This document shows, one piece after another, positions 12,533 to 47,582 of a stretch of 64,000 bases of DNA. Below the pieces are notes generated by a model. The model saw only the letters and a program-made list of their open reading frames with translations. It had not been told where the DNA came from and did not search any database. Every line of letters begins with the position of its first letter. Position 1 is the first letter of the stretch. A program made the translations under genes and the position numbers. This stretch comes from Haplodiscus bocki (Eukaryota), in NCBI GenBank assembly GCA_965655095.1, contig OZ296651.1, positions 6,200,001-6,264,000 of the forward strand. The letters run 5' to 3'.

Positions 12533-12778
12533 ATGACCCGCGTTCTCGTTAATTTAGCTTTACTCTTGATTGCCACATGCAGATGCAACTGGGTGGAAAT
12601 GCCCCAGGAGTACCTGAAGGAGTTGACTCTGCTCGCACAGACTTTCCTGGCAGACAAGATTGAGAGCGCTCACCAGTCTCTCATGGAACAGAGACTGCAT
12701 CTGGAAATCGAACAGAAGAACGCCGAAATTTGGAAGGCCAACGTTCAGGAATTGAACGTCAAAATTCTGCAACACCTG
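12533..12778 (+). CDS. CLU-like: Clusterin-family secreted protein, exon 1 (signal peptide plus coiled coil); 3' boundary uncertain
   Basis: MTRVLVNLALLLIATCRC signal peptide followed by a heptad-rich helix. A phase-0 donor is required; the best candidate is CTG|gctagt at 12779. Confidence 0.75.
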
Positions 12779-12954
12779 GCTAGTTACAAATTGAATTTTA
12801 CAACTTGTAGTAAAAACAAATTTAGATGTAATGCGAGTGTCAAATGTAGAAGTAGGTCCTTTTAGTGAAATTTTGCCATTAAAAATGAAACTTCTAATTT
12901 TTATGGTATACATTTACTAACTATTAAGCAACTTACTGATTTCGCTAATTTCAG

Positions 12955-13421
12955 GAACAACTCAGCACAGCCAAAGAAAACATCTTGAACCACTCAAAAC
13001 ACCAATGCATTGACATCCTACAAGTGCAGAAATTGAAATGTCTCGACTGTATTTCGCAAGAATGCAACGACTTTGCCAAAACTACTTGCAACTTCGAGAC
13101 CGAAGTCAGCCGTATCCATGAGCGCATCATAAACCTGCTAATCTCCGTGTTTCATGCAAACGATGACGCAATAGTGCCCCAGGAGGCTATTAAACAGGGG
13201 GCAGAGGAGCTTCAGAAGAGCACGAACATGCTTCTGCAGAAACTTCAATCGGCGAAAGTTGCCCTGGAGAAAACAGGAATGGTGAATGCGACAAAAATGG
13301 AGCAAGAGTTGCTTCAGTTGACAGACATTGAGAAGTTGAACATGGAATTCATTGCTGACAAAATTGATTATTCTCAAAAGGTTTTGGATAACCTGCTGGA
13401 GAAAGATGAAATTGTAATAAA
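12955..13421 (+). CDS. CLU-like: Clusterin-family protein, exon 2 (first five-Cys cluster)
   Basis: tttcag| acceptor. CIDILQVQKLKCLDCISQECNDFAKTTC has C-x10-C-x2-C-x4-C-x7-C spacing, the same as vertebrate clusterin. Donor AA|gtaaga, phase 2. Confidence 0.85.
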
Positions 13422-14685
13422 GTAAGATCAATTCATTATTGCAAATTTTATTCGGAGGCAACTACCCAGGTTGAGCTGCAAAGAAACAGAGAGGAAATTT
13501 GGCATTTTTAGCACGACTCAGATGCGCCCAAATGTATCTCAGTACGGTCCAGAGATGCATCAATGGAACCAGCCGAGATAATAAGTTCGGTATCGGGGCC
13601 GTAGTAATTTCTGAAGGCTTCGCTGCGTTTAATTGCATTTATTCAATCGTTTAACTATCAGCCAGCTAAATTAATTGGAGTTGAAGAAGCATCGATTCAA
13701 CCTTTGAGTGTGATTGAAACAACTCTCTCAGCTAATCAGCGTCGGAGCTAGTGACGCAATTGAATAGGAAGGAGGAAAATAGAGCTACAAGCCTCTCAGC
13801 AGCCAGGATGATACGCGGTTTTAATCGGTCCGTTTAAGCATAAAAGTGCCCAATTAGTAACTACACCGCTTTTTTGCTTCCTACAATCGCACTTATGCCT
13901 TAGTTGATGACAGCTGACCCTAAAATCAAACTCCGAATTCCTTCAACTTCAAACTATTTAATGATGAACTTTAAGTCATATAAGAATTTGTTCACATTGT
14001 TTGCTTACTACAGTCAAGGGAAAATGAGTATTTAACAGAAAGCACTTGCTGAAAAATTTTAGAAGATTTTGTTTGATAAATGAGAAATTTATTGAAACTG
14101 TCAGGAGGCTCTACAACTTACAGCGTAGTGGCACTTGATTGCTTTATCACTGCCCATACATGATCACGGGCTCCTTGATGTTTTCCCACGAATACTGGGT
14201 ACGGTACCCACGGTTCTTATTATCATTTTTGAATGAGGACGGCAATGTAAAGAGAGAAAAAGACAAAGAGAACAAAAATGAAAATCAAGCTCAAAAAAGA
14301 TATGAAGTAGAGTATTGCATGGCTTTTTTAACCACCCAAAGAGGATTGTAGCTCATGTTCCCAAGTATTGGTCCACTCGCCAAAACTATATGCAGATTCA
14401 CGTCAACAATCGACTCCTGAATGATGTGACTTACAAGATGTTGATAACAAGTTTCCGGAAAACTTGGCGCTTTCAATTTTAACTTCCAAACTTTTGTCAT
14501 TTCATAAGGAAACTTGTTCCAGATTCAAGAAACTTATTAAAATGAGGCAGAGCTGTGCTTCGCAACAATTGCGTCAACAGAATATTAATGAACTAATCGA
14601 TTCAATAAATCTGAATTTAAGGGGCGATGATACTACGAATACTGCTAAAAGGAAGTGTACAGAAACGCAGTCATTTCTTGTATAT

Positions 14686-14915
14686 TTATACACAAGTACG
14701 AAACGGTAAAATAATTCACTCGCTTGATGTTTTGAAGAAAAATGCTGATTTTCAAGCAGCAATATCATAGTATAGCATGCATCTGCGGCACCAAAGGTCC
14801 CGGTTTCGAGCCTCAGATAAACCCTTGTCTTTGTCAAAAAGTGGGAACTCGTGCGAGTTAAGAACGGATCGGGGAAAAAATCGATGACTGTGATAAAACG
14901 CTTGCTTGCGCAAAA
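14686..14915. mobile_element. Short interspersed element family Y, with a tRNA-like B-box remnant at ~14770-14820; homologous to 37141-37384
   Basis: Shared ttata.acaagta.gaaa, gaacggatcgg and tgata.aac.cttgcttgcgcaa. Confidence 0.6.
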
Positions 14916-17684
14916 TTAAAAAAAGTAGACATATAATTAAATTTTCCAGTTAGTTTCTATGGACTTTTCATTTCCGTCACTTTCGTTTTCCCGTTTTCCT
15001 TCAGTTTAGGCAAGTACCATTTTCCGTTGTGAAATACTGCGAAACGAAAATCATTCACTCAAAAATGAGACTTTTCTCCGCGTGTTTGTCGATTCTAAAA
15101 TAAATTCTCAAGTAACTTCTCGCTTACTTTCTCCGTCGTCATTGCTTGCCTCTATAGCTTGGTGGGCAATGACAAGGACACTCTATCACCGACGTTCGGT
15201 CAGTACGACGGCCTGGGTTCTCTCTCCACTACAGCTGAACTGTTTTCATCGTATTTCTCAATTTCATCCACTTTTACTTTAAAGTAGTTTGAAAGCACCA
15301 GGAAGTTCAATTTTCCGTTTTCAGAACTGTTTTTGCTTTCCTGTGCAAAAATCTGTCAAACTTGAACCATTTGGGTTAAAGTGAATAGTCTAAATGCTCC
15401 AAAAAAACTATATCCAGATTAACGCCGACAATCGAGACGTTAAAAATACGTTCTGGCTAAGCGACAGTCTGACACATTCCTAATTTTCCAAAGGACAAAA
15501 TTTTTGGATTTCGATGAAGTGCAATTTTTATTGGACTCTGGCTAATTCAGCTGCACGACTGCAAGCAGTTCTGAATTTCAATTTCTCATCGATTGCTCGA
15601 TGAAAAGTTCAATTCGAGGACGTTTTAGAAAACTGTTAGTGCGTTAAAAGCCACTTTTGATGTAGAAACTCTAAAATGTCCAAAATCTTGAAATCAATAG
15701 AAATGTTTTCCTTTAGTTTGGAGCAAAACTGTTTTCAATTTGGTTCGGAATTTGCTGTTCCAAATCTCACTGAAGCTTTCGGCTTGGTTCAGGCGGTCAG
15801 TTTTCTTTGAGATGATTCTGATTTTTTCACTCATTACCTAACGAAGTTTTAGAAACTCTGAACTTTCAGTTTGCATTTAATTATCTGATTGGGTGGCCAA
15901 GTTCTTCATCGCGTGTTGGTCTAGTTTTCTCAGGGGTTTCATGAAAAAAATAAAGATTTTCGCAGAACTTAATGCTTTCAGCGTGTAACTTTCGATTTTA
16001 AAATTTTTATAGAGTTGTTCCAGACTCAAGGAAATTCTCGTAGAAGCGGAAGCACGTTTGAATTTCCAAGCAATTTTCGATCGACTTTTTATTCTCATAA
16101 TTTTACGTAGATCGTTTTTCAGTTTGAACACTTACTATTCTCCGTCGCAATTCATTAAGCAAAGACAAACATTCCCTCAGTAGGTAGACTTTCCTCTGAA
16201 CGTCAGCCAATTCTATGCTACTTTCTCAAGTAAAGTCTCCCTTACTTTCATCTTGTTTATTTCTTGCCCGTGTAGCTTACTTGTCAAGGACAGCCAATTG
16301 CCAGCATTGGGTCACTATGAAGGCCCACGTTCTCTTCATTTCACGACCAAACTTCTCTCAATTTGCAATTGTATCAACTTTTACCCAATCCATTAGTCTG
16401 AAAACACCAGCATTTTTCTGTTTTTGTTTTTTTTGGCACCTTTCCAGTTGGACACTTCAAGACTATCTTGGAATGTTTGATTTGAGTTTCGAAAAAAAAA
16501 CGAAAAAACAAAAAAAAGAGGAAAAGGACAGCTTCTCAAACTTTATAAACAATAAAAATTATGATTAAAATAATTGAAGAACAAAATATTAGGAAAAGTT
16601 TTGAATACAATCTGAAACGAAATTTCTAACAGCCATATTATGGTCTTTTCCACGTCTTGAAAAAATCCTCAGCCGGAATATCTTTATGCTTGACCCTTTT
16701 GGCCCAATAAATGAAAATCGAATTGACTTTTCTCTCCAATCAACACCGATTTTCTGCAAAGTTGAGTTAGATTGTTCCTATCATATTCTCAGCCGACAGC
16801 CTTGAGTTTGTTGAACAGCATTCATCACTTAGAACTTGGATATTGCTCTTTGCACATGAATTCTTACAAGCCGATAATGCCAAAAAGATCCATACTTTCG
16901 TTTTGTAGATACTCAAACTCGCTTTCTCGGAAACTACGGGCTTGATTTCATCTAGCAGTTCCTCAGTCGAGTGTCTTCAATTATAGCAGGGAATTCACCG
17001 CAAAGCAACAAAGATTATCGAGTTAGATTTCTGATCAGCAGAACAACGCAAAAGGTGCCATTTGTATTGACAGTAATCGATTGTCAAACCCTCAATTACC
17101 GAAAATACTGGTTTGACAATTTCAATCAAGACATGAACCTGCAGTTCGCAAATTTTTTGTGAAGCATCACCAGTATTCGGTCTTGCATTAGAAAACTGAC
17201 TGCCCGAAAATGCAAAAACTTACTGTGAGTACTGATTTGCCGATTCAATCAAACTCATGTTTTGCTAAAAACACCAGCTTGAATACATCCACCAACGTCC
17301 CAATCAGCAGTTTTCAATCTACATAAAGCACTTCTAATTAGGCCATCATCGCTTTTTGTCCTGAATTTGAAATCTCGGGGACCAAAAGTGCCAAACAATG
17401 ATACAAAGAGGCGACGCTGAGCTCCTCAACACTTGCACCAACGGAATCCTAGTTAACAAGTCCAACATGTATATTTAACATTAAAATGCGTAACAGTACA
17501 AAAATTTTCTGATTAAACATACGAAAAAAAATTTAATTAACTTAGTTAATTCTGACAAATTTATACAAAGGTTTAACAAGTAGGAATTGCTATAGCAGTC
17601 ATTACGACTCAGATTTATAAGAAAAAAGTTAGCACGCCGATAATGAGCCACTTGAACAATTTTCTGCAACTGAGTGAAAGCAAA

Positions 17685-18629
17685 AACAAGACGGCCGGCT
17701 AGCACCGGCATACTTTTCGCCCAAATACAAATATTTTGATCAACATTTGCAAACAGTTAAAAACGAGACTACTGTTTACTATCTAGTTTTCGAAGGTTTC
17801 CTACAAACATCAATTCCACCAATGATTTTTTTAATGAAAAAGAGCGACTGCCATCAAGACTTTTCGATCAAAATTTTTGTCTCACGGTACCGAAAAATTC
17901 TGTCGGGGAACAATTCAGTGTATCAGAAAATTTCGAGTATCCAAAAAGATTTTGCATGAGAAGGAGAAGTCTCGATTTTGTGTCGAAAAATTTTTGTCTC
18001 ACAGTACCAAAAAATTTCGTAGGAGACCCCTTCCGTGTTTCAAAAAAACTCCTGTATCGAAAAATTTCATGCATAGGAGGGGGCATCATGGTATTGTCGA
18101 AAAGTTTTTGTCTCACAGGACCGAAAAACTTCTTAAGGGGACCCTTCTGTGTTTCACAAAAATTCTGGTATCGAAAAAATTTATGGATAAAAGGGGATGA
18201 GGGAGGGAGTATCACGATTCTCTGTCAAATATTTTTGTCTCACAGTGCCAAAAAAATTCGCAGAGGAACCTATCTGTGCTGTGTTTCAGAAAATTTCCAG
18301 TAGCCAAAAAGTTTATGGATAAGGGGGGGGGGTATCAAGATTTTCCCTCGAAAAACTTTTTCTCACAGTGCCGAAAAATTTCGTAGGGGAATCCTTTAGT
18401 GTTTCACTATTTTCGGGTATCGAAAAATGTCAGGGATAAATCGCACAAAATTTCGGCAGGGCAGTGACTCGAACCCCGAACCTATTGCTTGAGAACCTTG
18501 TTGTCCTAATACTACCGCTGTCATTTATTTTTGAAAACAAAAGTTGGCAATTTGGTTTGAAAAAAAAAGAAAAACGACCCTACCGAATAAATAATTTTTC
18601 TTGCACATTACATATGCGGCGAAAAATAA
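17685..18629 (-). mobile_element. Helentron/DINE-like non-autonomous element family H2, with a ~120-bp minisatellite core (5 units) and a tRNA-derived segment
   Basis: Terminus aacaagacggccggctagcaccggc with a hairpin. Sub-terminal IR ttttcgcc / ggcgaaaa. Units tttgtctcacagt.ccgaaaaa at ~17875, 17992, 18107, 18233, 18358. Inverted homologue at 46537-47582. Confidence 0.8.
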
Positions 18630-20849
18630 AAAAAAAACAAAATCTTGCAGGGAGGCGAGAGCAAATCAACAAAAGCTAAGCAAGGTTAGGATTTAGGCAC
18701 CGAAGCAAGTTGTGAACGGTTCGTCAAACAATCCACACAGAAACCTACGACGTAACAATGGCTTGGGCCAACACAATTGGTTATAATTCTTCGACTAATC
18801 GATTTCCGCCTAAAAGAAAGGCTTGATTATCCACCAAGGTGCTAACAAGCAGTTTTTTGAAGCACTTGCAATCTAACGATCACCAATATTAGTCCTTCAT
18901 CGTAGAACTAAACAGCCGAAAGTCCAAAAAACTGCTACTATAAATGATTTTCGTTGTTTATTCTCAAATATCGACTAAAATGAAGGCTGTATTATACCCA
19001 CCAAGATCACAATCATCGATTTTTTAACTGTACAAGCACTTTTAAATAAAGGATAAGCCCTTTTGCGTTTTGAGTTGAAAATCTGGCCAGCCGAAAATGA
19101 CAAAACTTGATATCAGGACTGTCTTCTCACGTAATTTGAAGATATATTTCACCTTACCAAGCCGAAGGAACACCTCCATCAAAGTTACAATCAACAGTTT
19201 CCGATAATCGGATGCATTTTCAGTTTAGCTATGACCATTTTTTCGATATTATTCGACTCCTGATGGGGCCAGAACGCCAGTAAGGGCAACTGGTGATCAA
19301 TTTTTCATGTAATCAAAGTCATGTTTACCCGAAATTACGGACTTGAAAATTTCCATCATTATGTCAATCGACCGCATTCTAATTAAACAAGATACTTGAA
19401 CCAAAATTTCGGCCTGATTTTGAATGCCTGACAGGACCACAGGGCTTTATTGTAGTTAGTCACGATATTCTGCCACAACCAATTCAAATTTTCGGCATAA
19501 CTACGGGGTAAGATCTATTCAATCAAGGTACCTATTGACAGCTGTTCCTAAAAGGTATCAAATTGGTTAAAACTAGAGAGAACCTAATTGCCCGAAAGGG
19601 TCAAAAACTGTAATTCCTGGTTCTGATGTTAAGAAGCAGTGTTCCTTCTGAAAATTTCAGTCTGTTAGTCCAAACAAGCTGGTGTGGATTCGACACATCG
19701 GAGCCCTGTCCACAGAAAATACAGCAGCACCGTTGTGACCCGAGTTTCATTTCGTATTTAAAACTAACACTATGGCTCATCCTCAGCTAACTCTCACTTC
19801 CTATTGTGCCTCAGAACAAGATAATTTGAGCCAAACTGTACAAAGAAAGGATCAATTTGGCTGTAACGGAAACTCCAACTTATCAACGAGCCAACGTTTT
19901 GCAATTGCATATTCCAAATGCAACTTTACCCTTCATTCAATCTTCAATTTTGACTATACGTCAAACCTTGGAATTTCCAGTGACAGCTCTCCGTGACTGC
20001 TTTAGGAACCGGTAAAAATGCGCTACATACGTTTCAAAATTCCTCCAACTTGGAGAAACTCCATAGACACAAACTCCTGTCATACTGCCCTACTTGAACC
20101 TTTATTCAATGAACTCTTGCAATCTAAACGTAAACAAACGTGTTTGGAGAAACACTCCGACAATTATGTCAGAGAAGCATCTGATTAATGAGCTCCAATA
20201 GATAAAAAAGCAAAAAGTACATGCCAACTGGGACATCAAAATTTCCAAGATAGTTCACTAATGTTACCTACCAGATAAAGACAATTCAAGGACCACCTCT
20301 TTTCAAAAACCAACATTGAAATTGATTCGAAACAAAAACTACCACAGTTGCTTTAGTCAACAGTTCAGATGAATTAATTTTTTTTACATGAACAAGGCAA
20401 AAAACCGCATTACATGAATATTTGCCAATGATTTCTCTTCTTTTGACTCTTCCTCTTTTAAATTGTGCACGTAGTTTGTAGTAGCAGTTTGAAATATATG
20501 TGTATTACTTTTCTCATCATTTTACAGAAATTGATGAACATTGCAGACATTTCGTTTCTGCTATGAACCTCTCAAATGGCTCATTCCAGTTAAAAATTCA
20601 AAATGAAGTAGCCTATGCCAAAAAATTTAAAATGAAGCAAAAGTTGATAACCTCATTGAAAATGACCGCCCGTAGATTTTTACGGCAGAACCAAAAAACC
20701 AAACGTCTTAGAAGGCGAACTGAGATCAAGATTTTCAATTGCCGCAAACTGCCAACACTAGAGGTTCCCCACCTCGAGACAAATCGAAACTCTTAGTTTC
20801 CCAGCCAAGATGTGTACTAATTTTTGTAAGTCAACACTTCTGCAAAAAC

Positions 20850-23250
20850 CATCTATGATCAGACTTAGCAGTTGGGGCGCCTAGAAAAAATGATCTTGAA
20901 AATACTCACTTTGATAGAATGGTGTAGATCTAATTCCAGTGATTCATGTATCTTGAATGCTGACTGAAAAAAGAACTTGGATTTTCTGGTTGAATACCAT
21001 GATGTGTTTGTAAAAAGAAGCTCTGAAGTGCGTAATAAAAAAGCTCAAGATTAAACTCACGCTCAAAACCGACATCCGGTGTATGTTTGAGGTCCACCAG
21101 CTCCCACCGACATGTGATAAAATTTCAGTTGGGGTAGCATTCCTTCATATTAAAACGATAGTCTCCCATACGAAATACAGTACTCTAAGGTTTTTTTAAC
21201 GCAAATCAACCAACATAGATGTTTTCACAAATTAAAGCCGCCTTAAACATCTACGACAAGATTATTCGAATAGCAAAAGTTGACGCCTGACCTACAGCAC
21301 AAGTTTCTACGCAATTCTTGGAGGCTAATTCCGTCGGAATTATTACCGTTGGCAAAAACATTCCGGAACCATAAACTTGTTTGACTCTTCAAGATAATCG
21401 GTCCTAAAACTCTGAGCACGTAATGTGTGTTTGGAACGACGAAAAATGACTTTACGTTGTACAATTATTCCTATCGCTCTTTCATCGGAAAGATTGAGAG
21501 CTGAACAATTTCTCAAACAAATTAGAATACCCAATACTGCGAAACAAATGAAGCACTTAATAGGCTTTGTAGAGTTCATTTTCGAAACCTCACTCTAAAA
21601 GTTGGCCAAAAACTTCTTCCAATATAAAGTTTGTTAGGCACGAAAATTTATCTTCGACGACCAAAGATAATTACGAAGCTCTCAAACCATTGAAAACTCA
21701 CTAAACACTTGCTACGATCCTAATCTTACCCTCCAGATTTGAATGCAATTCAATGAAATTTTCCGTTGGCTAAAAGGTGTTCTTGGCCTTGTTCTTTGGT
21801 TGAGTCTTTCTCTGATTTCATTTGCCGCGCCACAAAAACCGGGCTCCGTCTTCCGTGAAAGTGACGGCCTATTTCATTTTTAGGCCAAAAAGTACGCGTA
21901 CATCTCTATGAAACTGCCTAAATCGAGTTTTATCATTTAGTATCTTCCTTGCAGACATTCCTGCTAGAGAAAACTATGTTGCCGATTTTCTTTCAGGAAA
22001 ACAAAAAGATACGGATTTGAGCTCACCAAAAACTTTCGCGTACCAGGTCCCTGAATTTGCAGTTGAAGTGAAGCAAAAGCGCCGGACGTACCTTTGTCTA
22101 ACAATGTTCAAAAAGACTTTTGATGATGAAATTCCTAACGGAGTTCACGAAAAGCTGATGAACGAATTGAAAGCGCACTCTCTCTTGAACCAAATTTTAG
22201 ACACAACATGATTCGAGCATTTTGATTACAAATTTCCTTCTTTTCAAGTGGTTCCCCAAGTAGATCTGATTGAATCTTCAGAATTTGTGAAATATCGTGA
22301 TTTACCTAACCGACCACAATTACATATCTCAGCGTAACAAAATTATTGAAAAACTAAATTTATCGAAGAATTGGGCTACTGCTGACTGAACTTCCAATCG
22401 GCCATTTGCTTTAGGATAAAACCGAAGACAGTTTGATAGCCCAGTGGTTGAACTTGATAACATATACCGTCTATATTACCATGATCGCAGCAAAATCAAA
22501 CAAAAACTTCAAGTTCAACAAAAAACGTTGGCGAAAAATCTTCTTCCGTCTGCGCAACTCGAAGACTGCAGGACATCCTGCCATTGCTAAGACATTAGCA
22601 GACGACTTTATCTTCCTAACTGTACGGAATTTTTACTATCAAAAATCAGAAATTTTCATGCCAAATTGAAAGAGCTCTGTCAAAACATTTGAAAGCACCT
22701 TTGCAACCAGTATCTTTGCCAATTTCTTAACCTGTCGAAACACTTCCAATTGATTTAGTGAGACCATTGAATTCGCCATTTCAACAACCAGATTTTACAG
22801 CTACCGATGTTTGCTGATCAGTATGACAAATGTCATAGTAGACACTATAGCGCGAAATTTAACTTCAATAATCATGCGACATAAATACTTAATGCAAACA
22901 GATCTTTCTGATTTGGGTACTCTTTTGTAGCCGAATGAAAGAACGGAATAACGAAAGCACTCGAAATGAAGTTGCAAAATGCATGTTTAAGAAAGCAAAA
23001 ACGTTGGGCGTGGTTGAACGCTGTGATAAGGCACTAGATCGTTTTCTTAAGCTGAATACCAACGAACAACAGAACGACGGGTATAAATACTCCATTTAGC
23101 AACATTAATTCAAAATACTCCTCCTCAGCAAATGACTGGTACTACAGTTCTTCCATGGCCGTGGGCCAATCAAACATTCAAATATGCGATTCGAAAACAC
23201 AACGACTCTCACCAAATAAAGATATTTCTTTTTGCCTCACAAGACGTTAT
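20850..23250 (+). mobile_element. Decayed Ty3/Gypsy LTR retrotransposon pol (RT-RNaseH-integrase), in clusterin intron 2
   Basis: Translated remnants in Gypsy order: FLVEYHDVF (~20985), PNTAKQMKHLIGFV (~21530), IPARENYVADFLS (~21960), RNSKTAGHPAIAKT (~22555), PIDLVRPL (~22745), GVVER (~23010). Confidence 0.85.
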
Positions 23251-23545
23251 GATTAGGAAATTTTTCTAATTGAAACTTAAATTGACTGAATTATCAAATG
23301 AAAAATTCTGCTCATATCTTTTCAACTGATACATTTTCAAAACCAAACGTTCCCAATACACCAAAAAAATTCTCCCCCCCCATTTTAGTACACCTTATGT
23401 TTTTGCTACCAGCTGTTTGCAAGACAAAACTTTCCATGCAGGACCAATAAACAGCGATGACTCTGAGCTGCCAGCGGCTTTTTCATTCCCAAAATGGAAT
23501 GACTGGTTTCCAGAAACAATTACATAGAGTTCTGCGTTATTTTAT

Positions 23546-24028
23546 AACAAGACGGCCGGCTACCACAGCCCTCCAATTTTGTTAAAGATGCCTTTTAAAA
23601 AGCCGAAAGCGCTTTGTTTCAAAATACTTTCTGTCTTCATCGTATTTTATAATTTCTACAAATTTAAAACATTTCTGATTTTTCATCAAAAAAACCTCAG
23701 AATTAAGGTGAAGACATTTTTGAGAAATATTATCAATTGATAGGCATTCTACCGCAATCTTGTCAGCTTTAGCGGTTTTGAAAAAAAATTGAGATTTGAA
23801 AGCTCATTTTTTTTAAAAAAAAACAATTTTGAACGTTTTGAGGAATCTTACTATTTCAGTCTCATTCTACGGCGAATTAGCTACAATTTGGTGAAAAAAT
23901 TTTACGGTCAGAAAGTGTCCGATTAAACCGAACATCGGACATTATCAATTGGCAAACATCGGGTTAAAAAACGTTCGCGTTGAGTGGATGATTTTCCTTC
24001 CATATTTTAAACATGGGCGGGAAAAAAT
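23546..24028 (-). mobile_element. Helentron/DINE-like element family H1, second copy
   Basis: aacaagacggccggct terminus. Collinear with 6640-7141, ending ...cgcgttgagtggatgattttcc...atgggcgggaaaa. Confidence 0.75.
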
Positions 24029-24182
24029 TACGTTATTCGCTGCTTTAGATCTAAAGTTGCTGAATTAAAAATAAATCCTGAAAGGATTCAATTTTGTGAC
24101 AATAGATCAGACAGCTGCATGAACAAAAAACTTTTCTCTCTGATGTCTGAAAAGGACCTAATCCGTTTTTGACGTATTTCAG

Positions 24183-24661
24183 AGCACTCAACGGAGAAGC
24201 TACCAGTGAAGCACAGAAAAATGACAAGTCAGTCTTCGGAGTTGTTTGGGAAGAGACCAAAAATTTACTCAGTGAAGCAGCCTGCAAAGTTTCCTTCGGT
24301 CGCCTGTGCCCAAATAAGGACAAAAGCTCACTTTCAAAAGAGAAGGAGCCCAAACTGTCAGACATTGGCAGTATACAGACTCCGGATTGTAAAGAACTGG
24401 CGGCCAATGTTTCTGGATGTCTCACATTTTTGCCTCTGTGTGAAAACGATTGCATCAATATTGGAATGGGCGACATTTGCCCTCGATGGCTTGATGACTG
24501 GAAAGGTTACAAGAAGGCGTGGTATGTAACAAAAGAGAATCTGCAGAAAGTAATTGAGGAACTGAAAGTGGCCGAAGTGGAGCTGGTCAAAGTCCTTGAG
24601 TCTCACAACCAATTGGCGTTCTCCATCTTGAAAAACTATGGATGGCTCATTCCCTATGCAA
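24183..24661 (+). CDS. CLU-like: Clusterin-family protein, exon 3 (second five-Cys cluster)
   Basis: tttcag| phase 2. CKELAANVSGCLTFLPLCENDCINIGMGDIC versus clusterin [29 protein letters not shown], then KVAE and YGWL..YA as in clusterin FNWVSRLA. Donor A|gtgagt, phase 1. Confidence 0.88.
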
Positions 24662-24769
24662 GTGAGTACGCCTTTTAGCAATTTCGAGGGTGGCACAGCT
24701 CGTTATTGTCATAGCTTTGGCTGTAAGTTGTGCAATCCGATATAAAATGAAGAGGTGACGTATCAACTA

Positions 24770-25745
24770 GCCGACTGGGTGACTTCCCATATCTCCGAAA
24801 ATTAATCGTTCCCGTAACTCCGAATAGAAATCCTATTGGCTGATAGAACATTTCAGTTGCAATTATACCATCTGTATCATCCAATGAAAATTCTGAATTC
24901 TATTTTTACGTTCTAAATTCGAAACTATTTGCACTGATTTTTCGTAAACTAAATGCACAGTTCAAATTCCAATCTGAACACAATTTGGACTGATTTATTA
25001 ATTTTATTTACAGTTTATATTTAAAATTTCCCCTTTTCATTGTTTCATCACTCCCCCGCCCATTGATTTTTCACTCCCTCCCGCCCGTTAATTCTTCAAC
25101 CCCTTCCACCCGTTGCCTCTTCAAATCGATATCCCAATAATGAAATCCAAGAAAAGAAAACACGTTATCTATACAAAAAACTGGCGATTATTAACTGCAA
25201 CGATTGACGCCACAAAACTTTCCCTGAAACTCGGTAACAGAAACTTGAAAAACCACTGAAACACTATATATATATATATCACTTATGCTAAAGTTGAAAG
25301 AAGGGGACTGAAGATTTTGGGGGACTGAAGAAGTGTGTCTGTATGTGGGGAGGCGGGTTGAGGAAGTGTGCGTGTGAGTGTGTGTGTGTGTGTGTGCGCG
25401 CGTGCGTGCATATGTGTGTAGGGAAGGAGTTGAAGAAACGTGTGTGTCTGTGGGGGGGGGGGGGGTTTGAAGAAGTGAGGGGGGTTCAACAAATGAGCTT
25501 GGGGAATAGATAGTTAATTATTTTGAAGTTAACATTTTGATTCAATTTTTATATTGATTCAAATTATTTTTTTTTCATAATTTTGATTTGTAATTGATTG
25601 AACTATTCTCAGTTTTAAGTATTTTAAATTTTCAATTTGATTTTCTGTACCTGTGTTCAATTTTCGGAGTAATGGGTTTAAAATTTGAATTTCGGAGTAA
25701 TTGGAAAAAATCGATTTCGGAGTAATGAATCACAATCGACGACTG
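24770..25745. mobile_element. Foldback/MITE-like imperfect inverted-repeat element containing microsatellites
   Basis: Left arm has ctccgaa and ttcttcaaccc motifs. Right arm has ttcggagtaa x3 and ttgaagaa motifs. C-rich left and G-rich right. Confidence 0.55.
25366..25465. repeat. (GT)n/(GC)n microsatellite and poly-G run
   Basis: Directly visible. Confidence 0.95.
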
Positions 25746-27949
25746 CCCATTAAACCGATTGTTTTATGAGCCGAACTTAGAGTGTTTCTTAAAAACTATT
25801 GGTTGAAGTAGTTTGATTCAGTTAGGTAATATTTCCGAGCGACAAGCTGAAGTCCAATACGCGCAATTCAGATTCGTTCAATACAACAGTCAGTTAATTG
25901 AGCGGTCAGTCAAATGAACGGCACCCAAATGGAGCCAGTGATTCGTGCCACGGCTTTTTAAAACTATCAAAAGTTTTCTATCGTCATTGCCGAAAGACCG
26001 AAGCCAGCAAGTGATAATAGCGCGCCCATGAAAAGCGAGTAAATATAACTCTGTGACTGTGTTGCGGTTATGTCGTGAGGGTGATCATGCCGAATGAAGA
26101 AAGCGAGTGAGTTTATGAAGTAGTACACTGCATTCATTCGCCTGTTTTATTCATTCAGCGTGATAACAATGACTTCGAAGCCGAAAAAACTGCGAACGAT
26201 CTTTGAAATGTCTTGGACAGATAAAAATTTAATCTGCCAATCTGGTGAAAGGGTTTTCTAGTACCATAAAGTTGGGGGTGTCAATACCATTAAGTTGGGC
26301 CTGTACGATTGGGTCGATTGCGGCCCTGCTGATCTCAGTCAGAGTTCTATACATAAAAATTCAAACTCAGATGAGAAAAAATCAAAACCAATATAGTCAA
26401 TAAATTGATCTATCATTAATTCACGCTTAAACATTTTACTCTGAATAATTTAACCATCAAACCTAATGAAAGTAGTAGTTTTTGTTTAGTACTGAGTATA
26501 CCAAAAAAATATATACATTGCCCGTTGGCTTCTAAATACAACTAAACGAACGCAAAGTATGAGTGCTCCTCCGGTAGAATAATTTAACCAATAACCATTC
26601 AAATTTTATAAACCCGAACCGGTTAATCAGATTTCGTGTCCTAAAAAATTTAAAAGGTGAATAACCACTTTCATCCCTATATAGTCATCGATGGCCAATT
26701 CCTCGAAAAATGCCACCATCTTTAAAATAATACAACAGTCTATTTTTAGTGAGAAGAAACACCAGATTTTCCAGTGATTTTTCTAGTCACGTAAAGCTAC
26801 GAACTGCTAAAACTGTTCGGCACCAAAATTCTCACCTTCCAGGGTATGCAATTAACTCCAGGGCCGTTGTTTCAGACCAGCAACGCGATAGAACTTTTAT
26901 ATCTCCGAAAAAACTCTGCAAAGGAATGTACCGAAATTGTTTGAATTAAGGACTTTCTCAGGCAGTATATATACATACTGTCTGACAAAATGAAAATTTA
27001 TATGGAAAATGACATTTCAGATAGCTTTTGCTATGAAATATCATACCAAAGAGCCCCTCTGATAAATTTGCAATTTTTCGAGAAATACCAATTTTTTGTC
27101 CAAAAAGCCACGAATTTCCAAAAACACAGGACCACCCATGAATATTGACTTTACGAGTGGCGCCGACTAGGGCTGTTCCACGCCTGTTTATCTGTGCAGT
27201 ACATTTCCTAGATGTGGAATTTGTCAGAGAAATTTTTGTATACAAGCTTTAAGCTTATAAGCTTTGGAACCGATTTTATACGAAATATCGAAATATTGTT
27301 GAACTCAAACTCGTCAAATTTGACGCTAATTTAACTGAATGTGCCAACTAACTAATGATTTTTGAGTGATTTCAACCAACTTAACTTGACATCACTGCCG
27401 AGTACACTATATTCAAATTCCGTTTGTTAACAAGTCACGCAAAACGAACTTGAAAAAAAATCTAACTCAAAGTTGGTTTCGATCAGCTCGGACTAGCAGC
27501 ATTAGCTAGAGGAGAGACTACAGCTGTTGAAAAGTTGCAACAACTTAACAATGCATTTAGAGGAACGTTTCCACCCAAAAAACCCAGGCCAAAATTCCGA
27601 AGATTAAAACAACCATACCAATTAAAAAATTAAAAGCGTCTTAATAATTAAAGTACCCAAAATACATAAAAGTTGCATAATTACTTAATTGATATCGTAA
27701 TTATGATGCTAAACATTCTTGCTACTAACAACAAAATTCTATACACCATTAGAAATACAAAATTACTACCATATCTACCATCTACTTTGCAAAAACTCAT
27801 TATTTTGGAATCAAAAGAATTTGAAAACTCGAAATTATGCACTAAAATTTTTGGCAAAAACGAAAAAGGCAGATAAATGTGATTACGACAATCAAAGCGC
27901 AAATCTGCATTTCTCACCGGTCTAGTGGAAAAAAATAGGTATTCCAAAT

Positions 27950-28010
27950 GGGGGCATCACAGATTTGTCTCACAGTGCCGAAAATTTGAGGAGGACCCTT
28001 TAGTGCTTTG
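27950..28010 (+). repeat. Solo unit of the H2 minisatellite
   Basis: gggggcatca...tttgtctcacagtgccgaaaattt...gaccctttagtg. Confidence 0.7.
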
Positions 28011-31000
28011 AAATTATTTTTTGTCCTTTTGTAAATGGCAAAGTTTTAAAATTTTGGGCAACCACGGACAAAAAAAACGTAATAATGAGAATTATTGTTT
28101 CCTAAATTATTTTGTGTCAAAATTTTTGAGCGGAATTTTGCAACTGCAAGTTTTGGTTACCTTTTAAACGAAAACTTTTTAATTTTTTTTCGACACTACG
28201 AGACAAAATCGTGATTGTGTTACTTCAATCTGACACCACCAATATTAAAAAAAACATCGTTAAATTTAGGTTATTAGTAGCGTCTTGAAAATTTTAGCAC
28301 GGAGACGCTTTTAGTCATTTAATTAGGGCCGTAATTTCGATTTTGGGTATTTGGGGCTTGGATATTTTCAGTTTTGGTATTTTGGGATTGGGTATATTGT
28401 GGGGTGTGTATTTTGTCGTGCCACCGTAAACAACAGTTTGATTTTCAGGACACACAGTTAGAATGATTCTAAATTTATTGCACTTGATTACATGCCAATT
28501 CTGTAATTCAGATTTTAATGAGTTGTCATGCCAGCGGCGCTTTTAGCAGCAACTTCTTCCAAAAGTGAACTTCCATGCAATGAAATTTCAATTTAAATCT
28601 TGGATCTCTCTTTACAACAAGTCACACAGATCGAGCACGTGAAACACGGCGGGCGGAGTTATTGACTGCTTACATTTCACGTCGAATCAGATCGGTTTTT
28701 GGTCCTAAAGCTACACTCAGTGCATATAAAAACTTCCAAAACATTCCGTAAAACTGTCCCCATTAAGTGCAAAAATTCCCAGAGGCTGTCTAGAAATAGG
28801 GGCTGGTATATTCTTTGGCAAGTTCCCAGTAGTCGAAGAGAGGTTCATTTTAGCAGTGGATCCATTAGAAAAGTGAATTCGTTTTCCTTGGACTTTTCAG
28901 AACAAAATGGGGGCTTTTTGTCAATATCTGGAGTAAATTTGATCCCCCTTCGCCCTCAGTTGTTCCTCTAATTTACACGGATCCGACATTAGGAGTAAAC
29001 ACCCACAACTCACAAATCTTCCCACGACCAATATTCAGAAAAAGGCTCTGATCAAAAATCGTTTGGTTTAAGTAGAAGTCGGTTATGTTGAAATTGAGGT
29101 CAAAAACGTCCAACTGAAAATGTAAGTTACATCCAAGGATGTATTAACAATTTGCAAACCGATCACCGTTGTCAAAATTTGTTTAACGTGAAACGGGCCA
29201 CTGGGCCATATTTGGAACATATTTTTTCGACTAAAAAACACACTGGAGCTCCGTATAACTGTGTTGAGAGCTGGTACACTTCTGGTCTTGGCTTTTTTGC
29301 AAATAATTGGGCCATTGATGTCACATACGTGTTTTCTAAAAGCTATGAGTTGAGTGAGAATATATAAACTTTCACAAATTCAACCAAAAAATTCGTTCAC
29401 TCATTTCTGATCATATCTTCCGAACAGCTTCGTTTCACCTACACTACATGTTCCCCGGAACTTTAAGGCTTTGACAACGCAATAGTATTCATGTTACTAC
29501 AAGCCCCCGCTCAGCAATAGTACCGGAAAAACAAACTAAAATTCTGAAGAACGGGACCGCGCGGCGACAGGGCCTCACAATAACAAAATGAAAGCCTAGT
29601 ACAGCCCTTTCAATTGAGCTGTACATCGCTTCTGAATTCCCAATAGTCTTTGAGAAAATTGCGTTTAAAATTTTTTCCACCAAATTCTAGATTTTCATCA
29701 AAACAGCTTGGCCCGTTTAAGGGGAATGCATTAAAGTGTTGGAAGCAGACACCGCAAAAATGTGCTGCTCTCAAACCGAAAGTCTGCTGCCGCCCGAAAT
29801 GAAATCTGCTTTCTTTTTTTTGGAAAATTCCTTGGAAAAGTATGGAATTTATTCTTTTCAAAGCAAAAATACTCTCTCTGACCAAAAACTATAGAATGAT
29901 GAACTATTTTGAATACTTTTGAGCTAGTTTTTCTTGAATTTTTCATGTACTATTTCAGTGTACGTCAAGATTTTCAGTCACATGTTCTTTCATTTTGTGG
30001 GCAGGCGAGACTTTTTTCTTTTTGTTTCTCTAAAATCAAAGCATAAACAAGAAATTTTCCTTTCTGCTCAATCTGCTCTGAATGGTAAATTCTGCTGTTT
30101 TCTGCTCGCAGCAGATTTTCGCGGTGTCTGGTTGGAAGCAACGCCCACTCACGTTACCACAGACATCAGTTTTCAGCTAACAGTAATTTTCACAAAGTAC
30201 AAAACAGCACCAATTATCAAGTAGTGGAAAAAAGGAAACGGGCGTACAACTGAAATTACAGACAGATTTGACCAAATTTTGACAAGAGTAAATTGGGGAT
30301 TTGCAGAGAACCTGAGCTCAGCAGTGATAATTTTTGTAGATTCACGAACGCTTTGAAATTGATATTGAGTCTGGGCACCCGAAATAAATGTAAGAGAAAA
30401 CGCGACAAAAAAGTAAAAGGTCAATGAACGAATCATGAACCGCAATAATACACGAATGAACAAGTTTGCTTTCTTGTCCAATTTTCTCTACATGTACAGT
30501 ACTGATTTCAATTAAATAAACTCTTTCCTCAGCAAAATTGGTCGTTTTTGAAGCTCAAAATCTCAAAAAGTAAAAGATTGAGGAAGTAGTAAGAGCGAAA
30601 ATTTCTTAGAATTTTGACACTACAAAGGTTCCTATTTCATGAAAATCTGACCGATAGTCAAAAGGTTTGAGATCCCCATTTTTGGACATTCTCCAGCATT
30701 TTTTCACTTTTTCCGATTTTTCAGCAGTTAGAACATAACATTCTTTTCAATTCTTTATCTGATTACACTCGCAATGAAGGCCCCGATCGCAAGGTATTTC
30801 TCTTTAGGGGAAAAAACTTTCCATTTTAAAGAAGTTACGGTTATTAGGTGCCACTAATGCTATTCACATGTATTAAGATAAGGTACAAGGATGTCACTTC
30901 GCTTTATAGGCGTGAACTTTTTGAGTAGTTTTTTTTTCAGAAATTCGTAAATATCAAATGTTTAAGGCAAGATCTAAAGCTAAATAATGGTATCTGCAAA

Positions 31001-31314
31001 TCTTTAGAATTTTAAGATGGGAGTTTTGAGAAAAACCTCAAATTCGGTCAAAAATGAGCAAGGAAAATTAAGGTAAATATAACAAAAAATTCTCATAAAA
31101 TCTCATGAAAAATCTAAGGAACATTTGCTCTTGCTGTTTTCTCGTAAAACTGTCGTGCTTCGAGTAATTGGACCCCAACCTTGTTTTAATTTCGCTCAGG
31201 AGTTCACTAAATTAAAATCAGCACTGAGTTGGCGATGCAATTTTGCTGAATGTAAAAAAGCACATGTAAAAACTGTGAAATGCAATGATTACAGAAGTAT
31301 TTGAAATTTTTCAG

Positions 31315-31592
31315 ACAAAACAAACAAATCAGAGACGATTGAGGTGACGGGTGTGAAATATGACCCTGAATCATTCGACAATGAAATGGTCAACCGATTT
31401 CTCAATGCATCCATGGCCATCAAAATTCTGGGAAACGACGCCAAAACTGTTGCGATGGACCACTTGGTAGATCCCTACAACCCCCAAGACTTCGCCAGAG
31501 CAGTCGTCGAGAAGATCCAGCAAGTCGATGTTAAGGACAACAAAGAGTTCCTCAAACAACTCATCAAGGAGTTTTCAGAGGAGAAAAAATAA
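31315..31592 (+). CDS. CLU-like: Clusterin-family protein, exon 4 (C-terminal domain)
   Basis: tttttcag| phase 1 joins to give YANKTNKSETIEVTGV. IKILGNDAKTV...VDPYNPQDFARAVVEK resembles clusterin VKLFDSDPITV...VSRKNPKFMETVAEK. TAA at 31590-31592. Confidence 0.82.
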
Positions 31593-33629
31593 GAAAAATG
31601 CACGAAAATTGTGGAAACGGAAACGAGAGATTGAATAAACAGTGGAACCGATGGATTCTAAACTAATGTTTCCAAATTAATCGGTGTTCCTGATGGTTTG
31701 TCCATAAAATTGAATAGAAGTTTTAGAAAAATTTGAATGGGTTAATTCAAAAAAATGCTACCGATTACCAATAGTTACACACTGAGCATAACCTGATGGT
31801 CGAGACTTTTCAATATTTACGTTGCACGTGAGAATGAAACTTATACAATTTGAATTTATACAATCTTATAACAACCTGAGCTTACTTTCAATTTATATAT
31901 GAAAGCAATAGAATTCGAGAAACAACAACGCCCGAAAACACTTGGTAGCAGATAAATTGGAATACAATTGAAATTGCAGCCTTTTAGCCTTCTGCGTGTT
32001 ATTGGTCCGACCTCTCCAAGTACGGCGAAGCTCAGTTCTCAGTGTATTAGAACAATTGAATGCTCTCTACAAAATATTTCAAAAACAGATATTTAGCGAA
32101 CGACTCTCGAAATACTTTCGTTGAAAATAGTCGATATTAGTCAAGAACAAGTGTAGCAAGAACGTGCAGACATTCCTGTTGAAAAAAATTGCAATGGGAG
32201 ACTCGTTCACAGGAAAATCAGCGTCTTACGTTTATACACAATCCCCACTGAGTTTCAGGATGTGAGAAAACAACTCGGCAAAGTTGTTGCAGTATCTCCG
32301 GTGTATCGAACCGAGGTTGCGACAATGCAACCGTTTTCGCTAATCGGTAATTCTGGCGCAGAGACAAAGTTCAAACTTGCGTTTCTGACAAGCTCCCATC
32401 TAAAACTATCAGACACATCTCTCCCCTTTTTCCCCGACACCTTGTGATTGATCATGCCCTTAGCAATACACCAACCGGTTATAATTTAAGACTTCCCCTT
32501 CCTCCAGTCAACCTCACTTCGCCAGCCAACCTCACAATTAAGTACTTCATTCCTAACTCCTATACCCAATTCAAATAATTTCAATGTTTTCGCGATGGTT
32601 CAGATTCTTGTCTTCTCCTAGCCAAAGAATGACCACGACACTGTCTGAATATTAACCCGCAAGAGAATTGAAATTGTTCCAACAATTTGGGAGTCGCCTA
32701 CTGAGCAAAATTCAATATTGTGAGCAAAAAACAGAAAACAGATGTACTTTACATTTTAACCGAGTGGAAAATTTGTACCAGATGGATTAAAATTATAGGG
32801 CGGGTTGCCTGACTGACTTTCCCGACTTTAATATTCCCATTCTAATATACTCTGCGGTTCCTATAAGGAGTCGAGCCCTGGTACTACCTGATCCTCAAAG
32901 ATGCAACATGCCCAATAATTTTGATTCCTACGGTACAGAGTTTTGCAATTGGCTAAAATGTAAAATAGTTCTGCTGTTTTCTGGTTCATCTTTTTTCACA
33001 TTATTGAATTTTGCTCAGTGTGCGACTCCCAAAATGTTCCCCTACCCAAACTCAACTTATAAACATAGCCGCCCAGGGCAGCCAAAACTTCGTAAAATTT
33101 TTAGGAAAGCCATTTAAAGGACTTCTGCTTATGGAGATGCTTCTAGGGACTACCATGCATTCACCAAAAAGATCATTTTCAAGAAGAAATTTTTCGAACA
33201 AGAACACTACGCTAGCTTGTGAAAAAACCAAGTCAAAACTGACGTTCAGAATACTCGCCTTCCTTTCTTGACTCATTGCCTAAACTGCATCACAGCTTGG
33301 TGACCGATGCACTCTTTCAACTTTCGTTTTTAGAGACCATTTTCTGAGGGATCAATGCAGGAAAATTTCATCTTACAAAAATGGAAAAACCTTCATCAGT
33401 CATATCTCAACGAAGATGATTTAACTACCAAAACTGAAGCAAAAAAATCTCAATTCACGAAAGCGGCCACCCGGTTCATGCCAGCAACCAAAGGGACTGA
33501 TGTGAACATGGAGGCCGTTAGATATGCTATTGTTTAGATTTAGCTTGATAGTTCGAATGTTAAATTCAGTTTACAGACACCCCAACCCACCCTCAAAACT
33601 CAGGAAGAGCCACGCCTTGAGCAGTAAAC

Positions 33630-40869: not shown

Positions 40870-41133
40870 CTATTTGCGCTTCAATTTTTCATATTCTTCA
40901 ACAGTAACAGCTTTGATTTGAAAAGCATGAATTTCTTTGAGTTCTTGGGCAAGAGTTTCGTTAACCAGTCGGTGTCTCTGTAATAACTTCAAATCTGTGA
41001 ACTTGTCAGACACGACCAGAGCGTAGAAGCTAGCACCACAGCCACCGGAGGTATCTGTTACTTCGACATGACTCGGCGACAGAAGCTCAGAACTGTTCAG
41101 TTTCAATTCTAGCCCACTCACCGACAAGTCCAT
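40870..41133 (-). CDS. BOLA2: BolA-like protein 2 (Fe-S cluster chaperone partner of monothiol glutaredoxin)
   Basis: HVEVTDTSGGCGASF, VVSDKF, LLQRHRLVNETL and IHAFQIKA are hallmark BolA2/3-type motifs. Intronless CDS. Confidence 0.92.
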   Translation of the reverse strand: MDLSVSGLELKLNSSELLSPSHVEVTDTSGGCGASFYALVVSDKFTDLKLLQRHRLVNETLAQELKEIHAFQIKAVTVEEYEKLKRK

Positions 41134-46536: not shown

Positions 46537-47582
46537 TATTTTTCGCAGTATATGTAATATACAAGAGAAATTATTCATTCAGTAGGGTCGTTTTTCTTTT
46601 TTTTTATCTGACCAAAACTGCCAACTCCTTTTATTCAAAAATAAATGACAGCAGTATGGTTAGGACAACAGCGTTCTCAAGCAGTAGGTTCGGGGTTCGA
46701 GTCTCTGTCGTGCCAAATATTTTTACGATTTATCCTTAGCATTTTTTGATGCCCGAAATTAGTGAAACACTAAAGGGTTCCTTTACGAAGTTTTTCGGCA
46801 CTGTGACACAAAAAATTTTCGACGGAAACTTGTGATATCCCCTATTATGCATTAAATTTTTCGATACCCCAAATTTTCTGAGACATTGAAGGGATGCCCA
46901 CGAAATTTTTCGGCACTGTGACACAAAAAATTTTCGACGGAAGATTGTGATACCCCCTATTATGCATAAAATTTTTCGATACCCCAAATTTTCTGAAACA
47001 TTGAAGGGATGCCCACGAAATTTTTCGGCACTGTGAGACCAAAAAACTTCGACGGAAAATCGTGATACTCCCCCCCCCCCCTTATCCAAACTTTTTCGAT
47101 GCCCGAAATTATTGCAACAGTAAAGGATTCCCCTACGGAAATTTTCGGCACTGTGAGAGAAAAAATTTTCGATGGAAAATCTTGATACTCCCCCCCCCCC
47201 CTCTTATCCAAACTTTTTCGATACCAGAAATTAATGAAACACTAAAGGATTCCCCCCCCCCTACGGAAATTTTCGGCACTGTGAGACAAAAAATTTTCGA
47301 CGGAAAATTTTGATACCCCCTCCCCCCTCTCTGATGCATAAAATTTTTCGCTACCCGAAATTTTCTGATACACCGAAGTGTTCCCCAACGAAATTTTTCG
47401 GTACTGTGAGACAAAAAATTTTGAACGAAAAGTCGTGCATAGAATATAGAAATCAGTGGAGAAATTGATGTTTGTAGAAAACTTTCGCAAACTAGATTTT
47501 AAACAGTAGTCTCGTTTTTAACTGTTGATCAAAATATTTTATTCCTGCGAAAAATATGCCGGTGCTAGCCGGCCGTCTTGTT
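46537..47582 (+). mobile_element. Helentron/DINE-like element family H2 (6 minisatellite units, tRNA-derived segment)
   Basis: Perfect 12-bp sub-terminal IR tatttttcgcag (46537-46548) / ctgcgaaaaata (47545-47556), then hairpin gccggtgctagccggc and terminal cttgtt. Units ttttcggcactgtga at ~46792, 46907, 47022, 47142, 47271, 47395. Confidence 0.82.

Follow-up and report, generated by a model that had tools for sequence, protein, structure and literature searches.

Clusterin (CLU) is a major extracellular chaperone encoded by an Alzheimer-risk gene, and CLUL1, its vertebrate retinal paralogue, belongs to the same Pfam family and shows the same overall layout of cysteine clusters. We describe here a gene of the acoel Haplodiscus bocki which is very probably real and intact and whose product is very probably a homologue of clusterin from vertebrates (Pfam PF01093), though a deeply diverged one. 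The gene lies at positions 12533-31592, on the + strand, of a stretch of 64,000 nucleotides that is called the window throughout (assembly GCA_965655095.1, contig OZ296651.1, positions 6,200,001 to 6,264,000). A preliminary description of the locus had presented it as a full-length clusterin-family gene in an apparently non-vertebrate genome.

The reference for any comparison is human CLU, for which the crystal structures 7ZET and 7ZEU are available (Yuste-Checa et al. 2025, PMC12527946). Its two cysteine clusters are joined by five antiparallel disulfides, and its alpha/beta roll domain is made up of helix alpha1, a three-stranded sheet and helix alpha12 (PMC12527946). Chaperone activity, receptor binding and lipoprotein formation all depend critically on the hydrophobic tails that furin cleavage generates, and CLU is termed a 'conserved vertebrate secretory glycoprotein' (PMC12527946). 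In the protein encoded in the window, the N-terminal and the C-terminal half of the precursor each have a cluster of five cysteines spaced as in clusterin. The first one, C-x10-C-x2-C-x4-C-x7-C (Cys 100/111/114/119/127), has exactly the spacing of human CLU. The second one, C-x9-C-x6-C-x3-C-x8-C (Cys 307/317/324/328/337), is nearly identical to its counterpart in human CLU (P10909), the spacing of which we take to be x9, x6, x2, x7.

Evidence for homology with clusterin

Relatives of the gene are few. When 1.84 billion representatives were searched exhaustively by HMMER, with exon 3 as query, seven proteins were returned (P0001-P0007). P0001 is the open reading frame (ORF) of the window itself, P0002 is a protein of 503 amino acids with 50% identity to the query, P0003 is an exon-sized ORF from a metagenome, P0004 is the ORF of a close relative, and P0005 is a partial protein of 236 amino acids from a Tara Oceans catalogue that crosses the exon 2/3 junction; P0006 and P0007 are low-complexity matches. 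With P0002 as query, a word-indexed search across 5.8 billion proteins gave one further full-length relative, P0009, of 512 amino acids, which is deposited as 'uncharacterized protein LOC142337760 [Convolutriloba macropyga]', comes from an acoel and carries no Pfam domain in the protein database. Neither this search nor a word-indexed one that started from the family alignment returned anything beyond P0002 and P0009. Each of these two can be aligned with the window protein over the full length, at 38-39% identity, and the three have all 12 mature cysteines in common. In addition, exons of a sister species (L003) are 60-77% identical in protein.

Every position of the two five-cysteine clusters is kept in P0002 and P0009, and the sister species and P0003 keep all the positions that they cover. 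A further conserved pair, C272-x7-C280, had been overlooked in the preliminary description. Other motifs of the window protein are NYGW, NPQDFARAVVEK and the sequons NVS-G-C and YANKT. The three full-length proteins have two sequons in common, of which N313 belongs to the disulfide domain and N428 to the C-terminal one; the former, four residues ahead of the second cysteine of cluster 2, is also kept in P0003 and the sister species. Within the first 25 residues, the window protein, P0002 and P0009 have a hydrophobic core with a mean Kyte-Doolittle value of 2.6-3.0 over 11 residues, followed by a conserved (W/Y)V(E/D)M, and this segment is read as a predicted N-terminal signal peptide. The central region is rich in Lys, Ser and Glu rather than in proline and aromatic residues (proline makes up about 2% of the protein), and has one conserved amphipathic motif, KS[IV]F..VW.ETK..F, followed by the C-x7-C loop.

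The Pfam Clusterin profile has 430 positions and a curated cut-off of 23.6 bits. The window protein was scanned against Pfam exon by exon, and the whole-protein tests were made on the orthologues and transferred through the full-length alignment at 38% identity; about 45 protein pieces were scanned altogether. The strongest match was obtained with the C-terminal 193 amino acids of the C. macropyga protein (P0009:320-512), which reach 30.1 bits (E 3.4e-7) over profile positions 272-426, above the cut-off and with Clusterin as the sole family matched. This match takes in the second cysteine cluster, the long helix and the C-terminal domain in its entirety; it extends over a cysteine-free helix and the roll and is, therefore, not carried by the cysteines alone. 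Two further pieces of the same protein have Clusterin as their top match, namely P0009:256-425 (20.0 bits, E 3.8e-4, profile 269-360) and P0009:410-512 (14.9 bits, E 0.014, profile 349-426), and weaker matches are given by an exon of the sister species (19.3 bits, E 6e-4, profile 211-303) and by P0003 (13.7 bits, E 0.032, profile 207-352). Within the window, Clusterin is the top match of exon 2 (15.4 bits, E 0.0096, profile 63-131), and exon 3 matches it with 12.6 bits (E 0.068, profile 258-302), both under the cut-off. All of these matches are collinear on the profile. The Pfam scan proposed with the preliminary description is above the cut-off for one piece of an orthologue and under it for the exons of the window themselves.

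For the fold, AlphaFold2 was run with shallow alignments on the two orthologues. The model of P0002, from 8 alignment rows, has a mean predicted local distance difference test (pLDDT) value of 55.5 and a predicted template-modelling score (pTM) of 0.37, and that of P0009:22-512, from 17 rows, has 57.2 and 0.26; confidence did not improve with this second run. In both models the disulfide domain is below a pLDDT of 50, and the highest values are found in the first helix and in the C-terminal three strands plus helix. Together, these predicted parts match the composition of the clusterin alpha/beta roll domain (PMC12527946). In a Foldseek search of 350,542 PDB chains, the three best matches of the first model were human clusterin chains (7ZET_A, 7ZEU_A and 7ZEU_D), with E 1.7-2.5e-4, probability 0.98-1.0 and about 490 aligned columns, the next match having E 0.11. 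For the second model, 7ZET_A was again at rank 1, with a non-significant E of 0.16. VIA-align placed model residues 23-489 on chain residues 25-448, collinear from end to end, with Z 9.9-10.3; clusterin was the sole end-to-end match and took ranks 1 to 2, tied with unrelated helical proteins. A fold search of the ESM Atlas with the first model gave low-TM rows only, which are meaningless. We consider this modelled fold evidence supportive of homology with clusterin, not decisive. An AlphaFold comparison with human CLU had also been proposed at the outset, and what holds of it is the top Foldseek rank for the orthologue models, at low confidence and with TM-scores of at most 0.30.

Several observations weigh against homology and must be faced together. 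Window exons 2 and 3 score under the Pfam cut-off, and the match above it is one of about 45 pieces tried; corrected for this number its E is about 1.5e-5, still significant. Neither full-length P0002 nor full-length P0009 matches Clusterin, which explains the missing domain in databases, nor does P0009:256-512, which encloses the scoring piece, nor any piece of P0002. We suspect that the composition filters of HMMER, acting on the linker rich in Lys, Glu and Ser, may hide a full-length match. Human clusterin was not found among PDB sequences by phmmer or by the family profile, even at E 10, and a protein-language-model atlas gave nothing usable. On the structural side, the models are of low confidence (mean pLDDT 55-57, pTM 0.26-0.37), a VIA Z of about 10 lies within the chance range for helical models, identity to 7ZET in the structural alignments is 11-16%, and TM-scores to 7ZET are 0.12-0.30, low values that reflect the wrong global packing of the models. 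Moreover, a furin R-x-x-R site occurs nowhere in the window protein, P0002 or P0009, their central region has no conserved dibasic site, and disordered tails rich in proline and aromatic residues were not found in any of the three.

Taken at face value, these observations would fit a secreted coiled-coil protein restricted to the acoel lineage, in which the cysteine ladder and the helical layout are convergent and the weak profile and Foldseek matches stem from cysteine spacing and coiled-coil composition. The exhaustive search with exon 3, which gave acoel-type sequences only, and the failure of pairwise and profile comparisons with the human clusterin sequence speak for it as well, and it is the alternative that survives best. 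We nevertheless find it unlikely. Convergent cysteine spacing does not account for a 30.1-bit match that takes in a cysteine-free helix and the alpha/beta roll, nor for separate matches that come from four species, involve the N-terminal as well as the C-terminal half of the protein and fall collinearly on one profile. Clusterin chains also come first for both models among all the chains searched, and the order of elements is the same throughout (signal peptide, helix, five cysteines, helices, linker, five cysteines, helix, sheet plus helix) with sequons in register. Remote homology to clusterin at the family level is, on these comparisons, supported. The claim of a full-length clusterin is supported as far as family membership is concerned, but it overstated the likeness, as the furin site and the hydrophobic tails are absent.

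An intact gene in the acoel genome

The four exons were spliced by script into a coding sequence of 1470 nucleotides, which translates into 489 amino acids, and the reading frame is open across all of them, with no stop or frameshift. A tblastn search with the C. macropyga protein recovered exactly these four exons, in order, with E 5e-39 to 3e-11, and no further copy of the gene within the 64-kb window. Exon 1 (12533-12778) begins with the ATG and encodes the signal-peptide-like segment MTRVLVNLALLLIATCRC and the first long helix, the counterpart of clusterin helix alpha1 and of the beginning of the coiled coil; it aligns with P0002 and P0009 without gaps (tblastn with P0009, E 2e-13). Exon 2 (12955-13421), with acceptor ttcag/G and donor AA/GTAAGA (phase 2), contains the first five-cysteine cluster and long predicted helices. 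Exon 3 (24183-24661), with acceptor tttcag/A and donor A/GTGAGT (phase 1), contains the conserved amphipathic motif KSVFGVVWEETK, the extra C-x7-C pair, the second five-cysteine cluster with its NVS sequon, a long helix and the YGW motif. Exon 4 (31315-31592), with acceptor ttttcag/AC and the stop codon TAA at 31590-31592, encodes the C-terminal strand-strand-strand-helix, which is the counterpart of the clusterin alpha/beta roll domain, and the NP..F...V.EK motif; the corresponding part of P0009 falls on Clusterin profile positions 349-426. An AATAAA at 31634-31639, 42 nucleotides past the stop codon, is a likely polyadenylation signal.

Intron 1 (12779-12954, 176 nucleotides, phase 0) appears to be best read as a non-canonical GC-AG intron (CTG/GCTAGT ... 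ttcag/G), because there is no usable GT donor in phase; the preliminary description had left this junction unplaced. Canonical GT donors were considered for it; none of those in phase yields a product that matches the homologues, and the GC-AG reading was preferred. With the GC donor, the join of exons 1 and 2 is gapless against both P0002 and P0009, and at exactly this site C. macropyga also has a phase-0 intron, one with a GT donor (CATGTG/GTAAGT). Intron 2 (13422-24182, 10,761 nucleotides, phase 2) and intron 3 (24662-31314, 6,653 nucleotides, phase 1) are both GT-AG. The preliminary description had, thus, been right on four exons for about 489 residues and on phase-compatible GT-AG junctions for introns 2 and 3, and the other features it listed are all present: the signal-like hydrophobic N-terminus, both cysteine clusters, YGW, NP..F...V.EK and the sequons NVSGC and YANKT. 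Its non-vertebrate host is equally borne out, as the sole annotated full-length relative among 5.8 billion proteins is from an acoel and no vertebrate protein appeared in the exhaustive search.

Both long introns contain simple or repeated sequence. Intron 2 harbours repeats, among them a family found at 17868-18303 with a 114-bp tandem unit at 17981-18196, whose translation is of the kind FFGTVRQKFFD and KFRRGT..CFRKF.VSKNFM; at 46736-47089, 29 kb farther downstream, the opposite strand has a related copy. Within intron 3, a CA/TG-rich microsatellite-like stretch at 25283-25513 gives mirror-image ORFs on both strands (HTHTHT and CVCVCV).

The exon-intron structure is shared with C. macropyga. 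When P0009 is mapped on its gene of 93.7 kb (L005:1501-95184), all three introns of the window gene match in position and phase. Intron 1 corresponds to the phase-0 junction between QHV and TALE, intron 2 to the phase-2 junction in the codon preceding TLDK, and intron 3 to the phase-1 junction in the AAC codon of YA-N-SS, so that the same AAC codon is split. The C. macropyga gene has at least five additional introns, at least eight in all over the 93.7 kb. In the sister species (L003:782-14367 compared with window 12955-31592), window exons 2, 3 and 4 are split into 3, 2 and 2 pieces, respectively. Compared with the three introns of the window gene, the extra introns of the sister species and of C. 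macropyga have no obvious shared positions, which suggests lineage-specific gain or loss.

Sequence divergence gives a further measure of the state of the gene. Between the window and the sister species, over 389 codons, non-synonymous divergence is low (dN 0.19) and synonymous sites are saturated (proportion of synonymous differences, pS, 0.78), and similarity in DNA is limited to the exons, none being seen outside them. Exon 3 with flanking intron sequence is found again, at about 97.7% DNA identity with small indels against window 21401-26685, on a contig (L002) of the ENA metagenome-type assembly ERZ26859043, from the same or a very close species; the contig probably stems from a second individual, or a further haplotype, of the host species. 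This likeness means that host acoel DNA occurs in assemblies filed as metagenomes. The contig of P0002, of 1,625 nucleotides from a public run, is intronless and has 5' and 3' untranslated regions of 70 and 43 nucleotides and an AATAAA, and is therefore a transcript; with P0005, it speaks for expression of the gene in relatives.

It could be asked whether the locus is an unexpressed or decaying copy, or whether its exons belong to more than one transcript, so that no product of 489 amino acids would be made in the animal. There are reasons to raise this question. The runs for the host species are four, of unrecorded kind and from one study, none of them recorded as RNA, which also counts against our view of an active gene; intron 1 requires a non-canonical GC donor, and the other two introns reach lengths of 10.8 and 6.7 kb. 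Nevertheless, we think that such a state is very improbable. A decaying copy would not be expected to hold a frame open across four exons, to keep every cysteine and motif against relatives at 38-77% identity, to combine low non-synonymous divergence with saturated synonymous sites, or to conserve the positions and phases of its introns. The second contig with exon 3 and the full-length transcripts in relatives point in the same direction. From the open frame, the single copy recovered by tblastn, the conserved introns and the low dN with saturated synonymous sites it follows that the gene is, as judged from its sequence, intact, single-copy here and under purifying selection.

With respect to the surroundings, an intronless gene of BolA2 type (Pfam PF01722 in relatives) lies on the - strand at 40873-41133, 9 kb downstream. 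In the species itself as well as in its sister species, the contigs with the clusterin-like gene (211,730 and 754,256 bp) also contain the matches to this neighbour, at 99% and 84% identity, and linkage of the two genes is thus conserved. That the window is vertebrate or contaminant DNA, and the gene an ordinary CLU or CLUL1, can be practically dismissed, because nothing was found in its favour, no vertebrate protein matched exon 3 at E <0.001 among the 1.84 billion representatives, the closest named protein is that of an acoel, and the BolA2 neighbour is linked to the clusterin-like gene in both species. Farther away, an ORF on the - strand at 62810-63310 has the YGDADS motif typical of family-B DNA polymerases; it probably represents part of a mobile element of the Maverick/Polinton type or one like it.

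Possible mode of action and origin of the family

If the gene is read as a clusterin homologue, its product is probably a secreted, N-glycosylated protein of about 470 residues. It would retain the discontinuous three-part plan of clusterin, which begins with an N-terminal helix and long coiled-coil helices. The second part would be a small helical disulfide domain, in which the five-cysteine segment of the N-terminal half is stapled antiparallel to that of the C-terminal half, as in CLU, and the third part a C-terminal three-stranded sheet plus helix forming an alpha/beta roll. The step of which we are most confident is that the protein would enter the secretory pathway and become N-glycosylated. 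The cysteine clusters would then be stapled in antiparallel fashion, through the predicted pairs 100-337, 111-328, 114-324, 119-317 and 127-307, with the extra pair closing a local loop. Since there is no furin site, the protein would probably remain a single chain, with no split into alpha and beta chains. The last step is a tentative one, which we hold to be somewhat doubtful: the amphipathic segment and the surface of the disulfide domain might bind exposed hydrophobic surfaces, either of misfolded proteins or of lipids. The role would then be that of an extracellular holdase for misfolded proteins or of a lipid carrier, with the motif KS[IV]F..VW.ETK..F and the C-x7-C loop standing in the place of the tails rich in proline and aromatic residues.

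A distant relative of clusterin in an acoel implies that the family seems to be older than the vertebrates. A wider proposal is that clusterin derives from a single-chain, furin-independent extracellular protein of early bilaterians, which is still recognisable in acoels and vertebrates and has been lost or has diverged beyond detection in most other phyla. In our opinion the case for it is almost, not quite, as good as the case against. If it were true, the acoel form would show an ancestral way of client binding, through amphipathic segment and disulfide domain, that predates the furin-generated hydrophobic tails.

Full-text searches of the literature turned up no description of a clusterin from an acoel or any other invertebrate, although InterPro may list invertebrate entries of PF01093. 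The family and its fold are already known; its extension to Xenacoelomorpha appears to be new, and so does the predicted uncleaved form that lacks the tails. Should the homology be genuine, a xenacoelomorph member would move the origin of the family back to early bilaterians, and would offer a natural uncleaved, tail-less variant with which the ancestral parts of the fold could be separated from those that carry the chaperone function. Moreover, since full-length Pfam annotation misses the family and the orthologue is listed as 'uncharacterized', other invertebrate members may be hidden in proteomes.

Comparison with known clusterins and with the acoel orthologue

The closest described relative, LOC142337760 of C. 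macropyga, is an orthologue by its 38% full-length identity, the 12 mature cysteines and the three intron positions with their phases. The two genes differ in architecture, as that of C. macropyga has at least nine coding exons over 93.7 kb, whereas the window gene has four over 19 kb, and the first of the shared introns has a GT donor in C. macropyga and GC in the window gene.

The likeness to human CLU is one of layout. The two proteins have similar lengths (449 amino acids in human CLU and 489 in the window protein), and both are secreted, which in the acoel is a prediction. Their elements follow the same order, with helix alpha1, coiled coil, disulfide domain, linker and disulfide domain, and then a long helix, a three-stranded sheet and a C-terminal helix. 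CLU-like sequons are found four residues ahead of the second cysteine of cluster 2 and, as A-N-x-T, five residues past the conserved Trp; the former presumably coincides with human NSTGC.

Unlike CLU, the acoel protein lacks a furin (RxxR) site, its central region has none of the disordered tails rich in proline and aromatic residues, and it has the extra conserved C-x7-C pair and the KS[IV]F..VW.ETK motif; the full-length relatives P0002 and P0009 also escape detection by Pfam. The tails that carry the function of human CLU being absent here, homology alone does not transfer that function to the acoel protein. The gene is assignable neither to CLU nor to CLUL1, and most likely it predates the split between the two.

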